A program made the position numbers and the translations under genes. Below the pieces are notes generated by a model. It ran no database searches and had not been told where the DNA came from. It worked only from the letters and a program-made list of their open reading frames with translations. Shown piece after piece: positions 52,401-57,990 of a DNA stretch of 64,000 bases. The first letter of the stretch is position 1. Each line of letters begins with the position of its first letter. This DNA is from Salpingoeca rosetta (lineage: Eukaryota > Protista > Choanoflagellata), in assembly GCA_033442325.1 (NCBI GenBank), contig JAWQFM010000009.1:450807-514806 (forward strand). Reading direction: 5' to 3'.

Positions 52401-55400
52401 TGTTTGCGGGGTGTGTGTCCGTGTGTCTGCGTGTGTTGTACACGTGTCATGTATACGTGCTTGCTAGTGCGGTCGCTCTCGTCCCCCAGTTCTTGCTCTG
52501 CGTGTGGCGTGTGTATCCTCGCTTCACCTCTCACCCTCACCACTTCTACCACCACCGCCGCCTCCACCCTCGCATCATTCCCCAATGCAGTGTGCCAGAA
52601 GGTGTGCCACCTGCTCGGCATCAACGTGCTGGACTTCACGCGGTCCTTGCTGAAGCCAAAGGTCAAGGCGGGCCACGAGTTTGTGCACAAGCAGCAGACG
52701 AAGGAGCAGGTTGACTTTGCCAAGGAGGCCCTCGCCAAGGCGACCTACGAGCGCCTCTTCCTCTGGATCGTCAAGCGCATCAACAAGGTGCGATCGTGAT
52801 GGCGGTGGAACAGGGGCGGGCTGTTGCTGTTGTCGTTGTGTTCATCGATACTGTCGCTGACACTGCTGTGAGTGTTGCTTCAGTTGCAAACATCCATCCT
52901 ACCTGAAGTTTGGCCTCGCTCCTCACGATATACTCTCATACTCGGAAACACATACTCACACTCATGAACACGCACATACATACATACAAACACGCACGTT
53001 ATCATTCACTCGCGTTAACCCACACGTACAGACGCTGGACCGCAACATCCGGGATGCGCGCACGTTCATCGGCATCCTTGATATTGCAGGGTTTGAGATT
53101 TTCAAGGTGAACAGCTTTGAGCAGCTGTGCATCAACTACACCAACGAGCGCCTGCAGCAGCTGTTCAACAGCCGCATGTTCCAGCTGGAGCAGGACGAGT
53201 ACCAGAAGGAGAACATTGACTGGGAGTTTATTGACTTTGGCCTTGACCTGCAGCCCACCATTGATCTGATTGAGCGCAAGGGCATCCTGCCCCTCCTCGA
53301 CGACGAGTGCTTCTTCCCCAAGGCCACAGACCAGTGAGTGGCAATGGTGCTAGCGTGCGTGGTTGGTTGGTTGGTTGGTTGGTTGGTTGGTTGGTTGGTT
53401 GGTTGGTTTGTGTGCGTGTGCGTGTGCATGAGAGTGAGAGAGAGTGTGTGTGTGTGTGTTTGTGCGTGTGCGGACAGCCTGTTGTTTGCGAATGGCATCG
53501 CTTGCCGGCTGTGGCTTATCGGCTTATCCATATCGCCCACCGTGCCACACCCCCGCCCTTTGCCTGTGCCAGGTCCTTTGTTGACAAGGTTGTGAAGCTG
53601 CTCGGTGACGACGAGAAGCTGAGCAAGCCTGCGCTGCGCGAGGACTGCGACTTTGCTGTCGTGCACTACGCCGGCCGTGTGCCGTACCAGGCTGCCGGCT
53701 GGCTGGTCAAGAACAAGGACCCGCTCAACGACAACGTCACTGCGCTGCTCGCCAAGTCTGGCAACGCGTTTGTGGCCACGCTGTGGAGCGACATGTTCTC
53801 TGGGTCGCTTGCCTCTGCCAACCGCACGCGCAAGGGCGCCTTCCGCACGGTCGGGTTCATCTACAAGGAGAACCTCAACCACCTCATGGACACCCTCAAC
53901 CACACCACGCCCCACTTTGTTCGCTGCATCATCCCCAACCACGAAAAGAAAGCAGGTGCGACCATGTGTGAAGGCGGTTTTTTTTTCCGTGGTGGCCATT
54001 CAATGTGGGACATGGTGCAATTGGTGACGTTTCCATGCAGCGAATGCTTGCTTGCACGTGTGTCAGCTTGCTTCTTCGATGCTGGCCTTGAATTATTTTC
54101 TCTCCCCTCCCCCCCCCCCTCATCTTTGACTGTCACTCACTGCCTGTTCCTCCTTCGCACACGCGTTTTTCTATCCCTCCTGCCACATTTTGCTCTCGCC
54201 CACGCAACCGCCGCGGCTGCAGGCAAGATTGATGCGCCGCTTGTGCTTGACCAGCTGCGGTGCAATGGTGTACTTGAGGGCATCCGCATTTGCCGCAAGG
54301 GCTTCCCCAACCGCATCCTCTTCCAGGAGTTCAAGCAGCGCTACTCCATCCTCGTCCCAGAGGCCATCCCTCGCGGTGAGCCTCACTGTGCTGTACATGC
54401 GCGACTGTGCGTGTGTTTGTTATTTGAGGGTGGTTATGTGGTTATGTCTGTGTGTGTGTGTGTGTGTGTCTGTGCAGCGAACAACAACAACGCAATCAAC
54501 TGGGCTGCCACCCAGCTCTCCTCTTTGTATTGCTCACATTCGTAGTACACGCACGCAAACACACACACACACACTTTGACGCGCACGCAGGCTTCACGGA
54601 CGGGCGCCACGCGTGCGAGAAGATGGTTGAGGCGCTGAACCTGGATGCGCAGTCGTACCGCATTGGCCTGACGAAGGTGTTCTTCCGCGCCGGGATCCTT
54701 GCACAGCTTGAGGAGCAGCGCGACCTCAAACTCTCAAAGGTGCGATTCTCTTTGCAGGCCGTGCTCTTGTGCTTTGGTGCATTTGCTTCTGGTTTTATCG
54801 TGGGACAATCCGTCCATCGCCTTTCCTGCTCGCTTCTTTTCCTCCTCTCTTCTCGCTCTTTCCCTTTTCCCCTTCTCCTCCTCCCTTTACCTTCGCCCTT
54901 TCCTCCCCTCCATCTTACTTACTCGCGTTGCCTGTTCCGTGCCCCTACGCGTGTGTGTGCAGATGATCATTGGGCTGCAAGCGTTCTGCCGCGGGTACCT
55001 TGCTCGCCGCTACCACGGCGCCCTCCTCCACGGCGTACGTCGCAGATTGCACGCTGCGCCTTGCATTTGCTGCGTTTGCGTTGCGCATGCTTTGTTCGCG
55101 CTTGTCTCAAACACGTAACCAATGTAGGCATTGCTCGCCGTTCCCTCATTTCACCCTACCCTGTCCATCCCTCCTGTGTGTGCAGTCCAACGCGATTCTT
55201 GTGATTCAGCGCAATGCGCGTGCGTACATGAAGCTGCGCTCGTGGGCGTGGTGGAAGCTGTTCACCAAGATCAAACCCCTGCTCAAAGTTGCTCGCGGCG
55301 ACGAGGAGCTCCGCCTCTTGGTGAGTGCGCGCACGCCACACCGTGACAGGCGGTATTTCCACTTGTGCTTCGTGACCCTCTCATGATGCCCACTCGACTT

Positions 55401-57990
55401 GGACGAACGACACACATACACTCACACGCATACACTCACATACACACGCGCACGCATACTCTCACATGCACACCCGCACGCATGCAACACAGCGTGAGGA
55501 GCTCGAGGATGTGAAGCAGCAGCTTGAGCGGTCTGAGCTTGCGCGAAAGGAGGCCGAGGCACGCATTGAGACGCTGGAGATGGAGAAGAAAGAGCTCAAC
55601 CAGCAGCTGGAGGCAGACAATGTCGCCCTCACAGACGCAGAGGAAGTCCGCTCCCGCCTCGTCTCAAAGAACAGTCAGTATATTTGTGTGTGTGTGTGTG
55701 TGTGTGTGTGTGTGTGTCTGGACATGGGCTTAGAGGTGTGTGCCGCCCGGACCCCTCCCCCACCTTTCCCTGCTTGAGATGTTTGCACATTTTTGCTGTT
55801 GCAAAAGCGTATTCCCAAGCTCACACCTGCATTTTGCCTGCTCGCACCTATCTGCTGCACCCAGACGAGCTGCTTGAGGATCTGCAGTATGTTGAGCAGC
55901 AGCTTGATGAGCAGATGTCGACGACCGAGAAGCTGCTTGCGGAGAAGAAGCACCTGATCGAGGAGCTGGAGGACCTGAAGAAGGACCTTGGCACGGCCAA
56001 CCTCAACGAGGCGCGGATCTCGCGGCTTGAGGAGCAGCTGGAGACGGTGCGCAAGCAGCTGGACGACCAGACGGCCGCCAACCAGGAGCTGGAGGAGCAG
56101 CGCAAGAAGCTGAACAAGGAGCTCAACGACGTGCGCGCCGACCTGGACCAGGCGCTTGCCCAGAAGTCCAAGGCGCAGAAGGCGCACAAGAAGCTTGTCT
56201 CTGAGCTCGAGGACGCCACAGTGGAGCTGGACCACAGCCGCTCGCAGATTGCGCAGCTGACGGCACACCAGCGCAGCTTTGACAAGCAGCTCAACGACGA
56301 GCGGGGCCGGTACGAGGAGCTTGCCAAGGAGCGCGACGCCCTGCAGAGCCAGAACAGGGAGCTCTCAACCAAGGTGCTGACGCTGAAGAACGAGCTTGAG
56401 GAGGCGACGGACCGCTGCGAATCAACGGAGAAGGCAAAGAAGCGGCTCCAGGACGAACTCGACGACCTCGTCAGCGTGAGTGGAGAAACAAGAAGCCGTG
56501 ATTGTTGCTGTTGTTGTTGGTGGTGACTGGTCGTGGTGTGTCTGCGTTCTTGTGACCTTTGTGTGCATGTTGCATTTACTTGTCGATGGTACGCTCTTTC
56601 GTGTGGTTGTGCTCCGCCTACCCTTTTGCCACATCCTCCCCTCACTCCATCGCACCATCACAACTTGCACACACACACACACACGCGCACACACACACAC
56701 ACACACACACACACGCACACACACACACACACACACACACACACACACACACACACACACACACACACACACACACACACACACACACACACACACACAC
56801 ACGCCGTGCATTGGCGTGGGGCAGAGCTCGAACGACGCTGCGCAGGCGGAGCTTGAGGCGGCGAAGCGGACGCTGCAGATCACGGTGGACGAGCAGAAGC
56901 AGCAGATTATCGAGCTCGAGGACGAGCTGCAGCTCGTGGAGCAGGCCAAGCTGCGCCTGGAGGTGAACATGAGCGCCATGGAGAAGAAGATGAAGGAGGT
57001 GGACCAGACAGCCATGGAGGAGGAACACAAGAAGCTGAAGCAGCTCAACCGGCAGATTCGCGTGCTGGAGGAGGAGCTCGAGAACGAGCGGCGCATCAGC
57101 TCCAAGACCTCTGCGGAGAAGAGGAAGCTTGACCTGGAGATGGCCGACTTGAAGGAGCGATTGGAGGAGGAGCAGCGCGGCCGCACCCGCGACTCGCGCG
57201 CCGTGAAGAAGCTTGAGAAGCGCATTGCCCTGCTGTACGAAGAGCGTGAGGAGGACTCCAAGCTGGCAGAGTCGTCCTCTCAGGAGGCAGCAAAGCTCAG
57301 GGAGAAGATCAAGAAGCTCCAGGCAGAGCTCGACACCGCCGTACGTCAACGGCCTTTGTTGTTGTTGTTGTTGTTGTTGTTGTTGTTGTTGTTGTTGTTG
57401 TTGTTGTTGTTGTTGTTGTTGTTGTTGTTGTTGTGTGTGAACCGTGAGTGATTCCAGGTGTGTGAAGGATCCACGGTGCAAGCCTGCTCACCTCTCTGCC
57501 CCACCCGCCATGATTCTACACGTGTGCGCGTGCGTGTGTGTTTAGGAGGACGAGGTGACGTCGTCGATGGCCAAGGCGCGCCGTGCCGAGCGGGAGGCAC
57601 AGGATATGCAGGAGTCGCTCGCTGTTCTGCAGGAGGAGAACACGAAGCTCCGCTCCATGCTGCGCAGGGCCCGCCTCCGCAGGGAGGAGCTCGTCGGCGA
57701 CACGGAGGTGCGTGCATACGTGTATGTGTGTGTGTGTGCTGAATTTGTGTATGTTGAGCGTGCTTGTGCGTGTGTATTTTGTACGCGAGACGAGATGTGA
57801 GACACGCCAATACTTCACACATTGCGTGGTGTGTTTCTTGCAATGTCTGGCAACGCCATTGCCTTCTTCCAACTCTTCACTGCCTCATCCATCTTCCCCA
57901 CACCCACGCACCCGTGCGCGTGTTCTCCTATCCACCAAGCAGCAGGTGCTGGACACGACGCTGTCCGAGTCTGTTGTTGATGACGAGTGA
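49413..57990 (+). CDS. MYH9: Conventional (class II, non-muscle/smooth-type) myosin heavy chain with an unusually short coiled-coil rod; co-orthologous to MYH9/10/11/14
   Basis: SH3-like [40 protein letters not shown]-loop [86 protein letters not shown] motifs, [14 protein letters not shown], then the rod. Confidence 0.96.
57356..57433. repeat. (GTT)n microsatellite in a myosin intron
   Basis: Seen directly. Confidence 0.95.

Follow-up and report, generated by a model that had tools for sequence, protein, structure and literature searches.

The closest described relatives of the gene treated here are the non-muscle and smooth-muscle myosin II heavy chains of animals (MYH9, MYH10, MYH11 and Drosophila zipper; MHCIIa), whose rod amounts to ~1090 coiled-coil residues. 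The gene itself lies in a stretch of 64,000 nucleotides from the choanoflagellate Salpingoeca rosetta (assembly GCA_033442325.1, contig JAWQFM010000009.1, positions 450,807 to 514,806 of the forward strand), which we call the window, and it encodes a myosin II with a tail of less than half the usual length.

The long animal tail has been traced in the folded 10S state of NM2B, in a structure from 2026 that places bend 1 at D1160-Q1166, bend 2 at D1522-N1526, the skip residues at Q1193, Q1586 and K1811, and the assembly domains at 1729-1763 and 1875-1913 (PMC13438149); D1559 and N1574 provide further landmarks in the smooth-muscle protein (PMC8694606). A short rod is known from Acanthamoeba myosin II, a two-headed molecule that forms bipolar minifilaments of 8-16 molecules, ~200 nm (PMC2115822, PMC2112911). 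The apical actomyosin ring and the amoeboid switch of choanoflagellates have become models for the origin of animal contractility, and studies of this contractility assume an ordinary homologue of animal myosin II as the motor (10.1101/661009; PMC7895527).

A myosin II gene with a tail of less than half the usual length

The whole class II heavy chain gene, with ~20 exons, occupies 49413..57990 on the plus strand of the window. Its product is the public protein XP_004994069.1 / F2U9L1 (myosin, Salpingoeca rosetta, 1354 amino acids), from which the spliced sequence was taken, while the exon pieces were searched one by one. A tblastn search of the window with this protein gave 20 exon matches with 100% identity in the exon cores. 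According to Pfam, the product has the same domain order as the animal proteins: an SH3-like N-domain (PF02736, residues 27-71, 49.6 bits), the motor domain (PF00063, residues 82-763, 931 bits), an IQ motif (PF00612, residues 782-798, with no separate second IQ detected) and Myosin_tail_1 (PF01576, 195.6 bits). An earlier phylogeny placed the gene in MHCIIa (PMC3502136), and the best rod matches of its tail are MYH9, MYH10, MYH11 and zipper.

The length of the tail can be counted from the invariant proline at the end of the neck, residue 835 (P835, window 55276-55278), which sits in a KIKPLL motif kept as in animals. There are 519 residues after this proline in S. rosetta, as against 1100-1140 in the 98 animal non-muscle and smooth myosins of our hit lists (1118-1130 in six). 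An earlier note on this DNA, made from the letters of the window, had put the rod at ~520 residues and called it half-length, and the count agrees. The long tail of ~1,100 residues seen in class II myosins is therefore absent here; such a length is typical of the family and not strictly defining, as the case of Acanthamoeba indicates. That note also raised the matter of a second, full-length myosin II paralog, and there is none: when the whole genome (55.4 Mb in 68 contigs) was searched with the PF01576 profile, the window gene was the sole matching locus. S. rosetta has this one non-muscle-type myosin II heavy chain and no other. The myosin motor family as such gave 111 exon-level matches on many contigs, which fits the very large myosin repertoire reported for this species.

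Mapping of the tail onto the animal rod

We read the S. rosetta rod as the ancestral holozoan rod of ~1090 residues minus ~596 residues, leaving ~495 coiled-coil residues. This reading, together with the short filaments and the miniature off state it would entail, is in our judgement the best overall explanation, with a probability of roughly 0.8. The kept parts, in NM2B numbering (rod index + 842, tied to the letters by matching the bend and skip residues), are 843-~965, the proximal S2 that runs along the heads; ~1363-1628, which holds the bend-2 region, the acidic ELEDE patch and skip residue 2; and 1826-1933, followed by the acidic tailpiece. These blocks are collinear with the animal rods and 30-46% identical to them. 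What has been lost is a block of ~397 residues (NM2B ~966-1362, that is, most of S2, bend 1 and skip 1), 2 residues in bend 2, and exactly 197 residues of segment 3 (NM2B 1629-1825, with skip 3 and the assembly domain 1729-1763). The features of the tail are as follows, offsets being shifts relative to the animal rod:

55186..55320, plus strand: exon A, end of the lever arm, P835 and the first 14 rod residues
55493..55673, plus strand: exon B, proximal S2; follows the beginning of the animal rod collinearly (Pfam tail positions 12-69; MYH7 853-909)
55865..56475, plus strand: exon C, last part of the proximal S2 with junction 1, followed by the mid-rod block corresponding to human NM2B ~1363-1526
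55987..56010, plus strand: junction 1, residues 951-958, heptad break L-G-T-A-N-L-N-E where ~397 animal residues are absent; candidate hairpin tip (bend 1 equivalent)
56473..56848, plus strand: bend 2 equivalent, S-S-S-N-D-A-A-Q-A, residues 1113-1121, interrupted by the intron between exons C and D
56825..57340, plus strand: exon D, the NM2B 1529-1628 block (with the ELEDE patch and, near 57014, the retained skip residue), followed after junction 2 by late-rod sequence
57146..57151, plus strand: junction 2, D1221/L1222, where NM2B 1629-1825 (197 residues) is absent with the heptad phase intact
57296..57617, plus strand: probable equivalent of the C-terminal assembly domain, residues ~1271-1309 corresponding to NM2B 1875-1913, crossing the intron between exons D and E; part of the block at offset 596
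57546..57707, plus strand: exon E, last part of the coiled coil, then the beginning of the tailpiece
57943..57990, plus strand: exon F, final stretch of the non-helical tailpiece, acidic and rich in Ser/Thr, with the stop codon

All boundaries of exons A-F are AG/GT, with compatible phases.

To map the tail, 33 diverse animal rods aligned without gaps from the proline to rod position ~1084 were compared with an alignment of 8 choanoflagellate rods. With rod index 1 set at P835, every stretch was scored profile against profile on all diagonals, and dynamic programming was applied. Coiled-coil composition inflates such scores, so each claim was judged against the distribution over alternative offsets. 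Rod positions 1-~120 map to the animal rod at offset 0 (z = 6.4 for 1-100), 124-287 at offset 397 (z = 6.9 for 125-280), 288-387 at offset 399 (z = 9.6 for 281-385) and 388-495 at offset 596 (z = 5.9 for 401-495), where the runner-up is offset 399 with z = 3.9, one super-repeat away. A HMMER search with a hidden Markov model built from the 33 animal rods gave the same three domains in seven of the eight choanoflagellate species, with model ranges of 1-117/123, 515/521-788/798 and 977/986-1092/1117. The third domain scores 34-46 bits, and 21.9 bits in Monosiga brevicollis XP_001742581.1. E-values from this self-built model refer to a tiny database, and it is the bit scores and the offset comparisons that carry the argument.

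The heptad register leads to the same map. Tracking of the hydrophobic core finds all three skip residues known from animal rods, and in S. rosetta it gives the phases 5, 1, 6 and 0 in succession, exactly as the offsets predict, with the shift from 5 to 1 at rod index ~120. At the site of the first loss, 397 residues or 14 x 28 + 5, the heptads are interrupted by a 3-3 spacing in L-G-T-A-N-L-N-E, the form of which is conserved in all eight choanoflagellate species. A second break of phase falls in S-S-S-N-D-A-A-Q-A, which is 2 residues shorter than the animal SSKDDVGKNVH. The second loss takes out 7 x 28 residues together with skip residue 3, 197 in all, and the heptads run on in phase across junction 2. 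The two conserved breaks are among the points in which the rod differs from that of the animal proteins. The two rods have in common the C-terminal assembly region, skip residue 2, a charge repeat of 28 residues and, behind bend 2, the ELEDE patch. In S. rosetta the charges recur every 27.9-28.1 residues, with a third harmonic of 9.4, and the net charge of the last 100 coiled-coil residues is +3, compared with +4 in animals.

Several results weigh against the reading given above, and many of them favour an alternative in which the tail is truncated at its C-terminal end. The rod would then be collinear after the first deletion, from NM2B ~1363 to ~1736, and simply stop; the assembly region would be lost, and exons E and F would be lineage-specific. 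Pfam aligns residues 8-168 of exon D with tail positions 681-841 in one stretch through junction 2, phmmer with the single sequence aligns residues 8-169 with MYH9 1521-1682, again collinear past the junction, and in Choanoeca perplexa the second HMMER domain runs on past it to model position 891. Exon E alone has no significant match in Pfam or phmmer, and a single-sequence search of the genome with the 108 C-terminal residues of the animal rod alone gave nothing significant. Furthermore, the first deletion is no multiple of 7 or 28 and leaves the heptad break described above.

The placement of junction 2 is based on profile-level evidence, and on this evidence we regard truncation as unlikely. 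The last block, rod 401-495, scores 104.9 at offset 596 and 57.5 at offset 399, and its identity to the animal rod is 30% at the former and 21% at the latter, against a background of ~9-10%. The third HMMER domain stands apart in the seven species mentioned, and at offset 596 the ..L+..LRR motif and the C-terminal limit of the coiled coil both fall level with the animal end. The collinear alignment of single sequences also scores because the two offsets differ by exactly one 197-residue super-repeat.

As regards the particulars of the earlier note, the two jumps lie where it had predicted them, at residues ~951-958 within exon C and at D1221/L1222 within exon D, the latter precisely behind the letters RKLDLEMAD. 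Its view that the C-terminal assembly region is kept is upheld as well, since the last ~108 coiled-coil residues correspond to NM2B 1826-1933, including 1875-1913, and the acidic tailpiece is also there. It had given the gaps as ~2x196 and ~1x196 residues, and the values found, 397 (+2) and 197, come close; the first, however, is no clean multiple of 28 or 196.

Distribution among choanoflagellates and direction of change

The earlier note had presented the half-length rod as a peculiarity of the S. rosetta gene, which it is not. The short rod is common to seven named choanoflagellates and to further transcript sequences. Besides the S. rosetta protein, these are, with the lengths in amino acids and the sources where recorded (ORF, open reading frame):

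Barroeca monosierra: 1353, genome-derived gene model
Microstomoeca roanoka: 1357, complete transcript ORF
Choanoeca flexa: 1356, complete transcript ORF
Choanoeca perplexa: 1355, complete transcript ORF
Monosiga brevicollis: 1372, genome-derived gene model
Salpingoeca urceolata: 1415, complete transcript ORF
EukProt transcript: 1349
Three Logan assemblies: 1371, 1376 and 1270

The alignment of the eight rods is free of insertions and deletions except for one residue in S. urceolata and 20 amino acids in the Monosiga model. The latter insertion (XP_001742581.1, rod ~60-80) is the hydrophobic stretch TRNLVLFMRNLWCLFHGIDH, which breaks the coiled coil, is absent from all other choanoflagellate rods compared, and looks like an unspliced intron in the annotation. 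A search for more choanoflagellate rods with the tail of P0273 returned only animal myosins.

This distribution bears on the possibility that the short rod is an artefact, produced by a faulty gene model, by overlooked exons or by collapse in the assembly. The introns do hold long (CA)n, (TG)n and (TTG)n arrays, which might hinder assembly. However, both junctions lie within uninterrupted exons, and the four introns from exon B to exon F measure no more than 191-349 bases each and consist mostly of microsatellite, so that there is no room for ~1.8 kb of hidden coding sequence; missed exons are thus no explanation, as the earlier note had argued. When both deleted segments of the animal rod were searched in the S. 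rosetta genome there were zero matches, while a retained animal segment, used as a control, found exons C and D only. Since the same rod length is found in the complete transcript ORFs of Microstomoeca, the two Choanoeca species and S. urceolata, in addition to the Barroeca and Monosiga gene models, an error of assembly or annotation is excluded for practical purposes. The trait is real, conserved and lineage-wide.

One could also reverse the direction of change, taking the short rod as ancestral and the animal rod as the product of inserted super-repeats. In an unrooted motor tree, built without striated sequences, the short-rod sequences form no single supported clade, which would suit this view. 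It is very improbable on several grounds. Ichthyophonus hoferi branches before the split of choanoflagellates and animals, and the tail of its protein (1733 amino acids in full) can be aligned collinearly with the animal rod over 914 residues, including most of what the choanoflagellates have lost; it follows that the long rod is ancestral and the choanoflagellate rod derived by deletion. Dictyostelium and other amoebozoan myosins II likewise have a long rod, and the heptad breaks at the junctions of the short rod are of the kind that deletions would leave. The Ichthyophonus tail stops at rod position ~919, without a C-terminal assembly region or tailpiece. It was considered as a rod of intermediate length and rejected as such, for it is collinear, ends early and is probably an incomplete model.

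With the rod read as shortened by deletion, the short form provides a clear-cut shared derived character for a large part of the choanoflagellates at the least. By its own terms the earlier note would be refuted if all choanoflagellate rods were already known to have this length, and the shared rod comes near to this. The sequences are public and annotated; the length, on the other hand, is remarked on in no paper that we found. No statement about a short choanoflagellate myosin II rod was found in the searchable literature, although such a rod may already be visible in, for example, supplementary Fig. S4 of Brunet et al. 2019, nor was any found there about the relation of this rod to the super-repeat and the 10S fold.

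Folded state, filaments and remaining features of the locus

The positions of the losses can be set against the bends of the 10S tail. The first deleted block covers index 118/124-520, and its centre, at 319-322, falls on bend 1 (318-324). The 2-residue loss lies inside bend 2 (DVGKN, index 680-684). The parts retained include the S2 beside the heads, the ELEDE patch, which is turned towards Ser19 in the regulatory light chain of the blocked head, the equivalents of D1559 and N1574, skip 2, the 1875-1913 domain and the tailpiece. The breaks at rod index ~120 and ~284 are compatible with a fold of two bends and three segments, and in our reading the S. rosetta molecule would fold in this way, at junction 1 and at the bend 2 equivalent. 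When junction 1 is taken as the hairpin tip, the three 10S segments of 321, 361 and 408 residues become 121, 163 and 210, a loss of 198-200 residues in each. Segment 2, which in animals is 40 residues longer than segment 1, exceeds it by 42 in the choanoflagellate tail, and the overshoot of segment 3 past the hairpin tip is 48 instead of 47. All these values come directly from the alignment.

This pattern raises the possibility that the tail is a scaled-down 10S tail, from which one super-repeat of 196/197 residues (~29 nm) was taken out per segment, with trims of 5 and 2 residues at the bends. We hold this view tentatively, at somewhat less than even chances. In its strong form, bend 1 itself would be retained and the gap of 397 would equal 196 + 5 + 196. 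Residues 938-951 score best at +196, where they align with animal EELEALKTEL (56% identity, NM2B 1142-1155), and residues 952-963 score best at +201, with GTANLNEAR set against STATQQELR (sponge GTAAAQEVR; 40% identity, NM2B 1161-1172). HMMER searches with fragments of 33-45 residues round junction 1 gave 2-8 bits, with weak placements that were inconsistent across species, and for this reason the retention of bend 1 is only suggestive. If the scaling is true, S. rosetta has a natural mini-myosin II with an off state barely longer than its heads, and the folded state, along with filament packing, would have been under selection.

We envisage a myosin with two heads and a tail that measures ~73 nm (~495 coiled-coil residues x 0.1485 nm per residue) instead of ~160 nm. 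Since each segment is ~198-200 residues shorter, it could still fold into a miniature, light-chain-regulated 10S state. ML-7 and blebbistatin block the contraction of Choanoeca flexa (bioRxiv 10.1101/661009); this sensitivity fits light-chain regulation, which in turn fits an off state built on interacting heads. The best parallel staggers in a scan for charge complementarity are 97 and 294 residues, as compared with 98 and 295 in animal rods. With the stagger charge pattern and the C-terminal assembly region kept, the molecule would be expected to assemble by the usual charge staggers of ~98 and ~295 residues, into much shorter bipolar filaments. Two further points belong with those that weigh against our reading. 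In NM2B the three segments are locked together in a region that shares residues with the assembly domain 1729-1763; as this domain is lost in S. rosetta, any off state would not be held in quite the same way; and the tail length in nanometres, the filament size and the folding are all derived from sequence.

Acanthamoeba myosin II offers a comparison, being likewise a two-headed class II myosin with a short rod. Its rod is somewhat longer, ~87-90 nm, and it is regulated through phosphorylation of the tail and not through the light chain. The filaments may be expected to be similar in scale but not in origin: the choanoflagellate rod is read as an edited animal-type rod and the two shortenings as independent.

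A tail of ~73 nm would mean much shorter filaments with fewer motors and a shorter bare zone, and would affect force, processivity and the scale of contractile structures. Care is therefore needed with inferences drawn from commercial antibodies or from animal filament models. The pattern of losses, symmetric about bend 1, with a trim at bend 2 and one exact super-repeat out of segment 3, may be seen as a natural experiment that separates the indispensable from the dispensable parts of the rod, and the small size could ease the structure determination of the full folded molecule. The short rod as such is structurally intriguing; its functional reading is a proposal.

Two minor features of the locus may be added. 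The five tail introns share the same polarity of repeats, which are GT-rich after the donors and AC-rich before the acceptors: (TG)16, (TTG)26 and GTGTGT runs follow the donors, and (CA)67 and ACACGCATACACTC units precede the acceptors. The repeats lie at

55410-55483
55685-55717
56668-56802
57356-57434
57708-57740

Beyond the myosin gene, and convergent with its 3' end, an intron-free ORF of 311 amino acids on the minus strand (window 58890-59825) codes for a protein of the mitochondrial carrier family, with three PF00153 repeats (82.8 bits).

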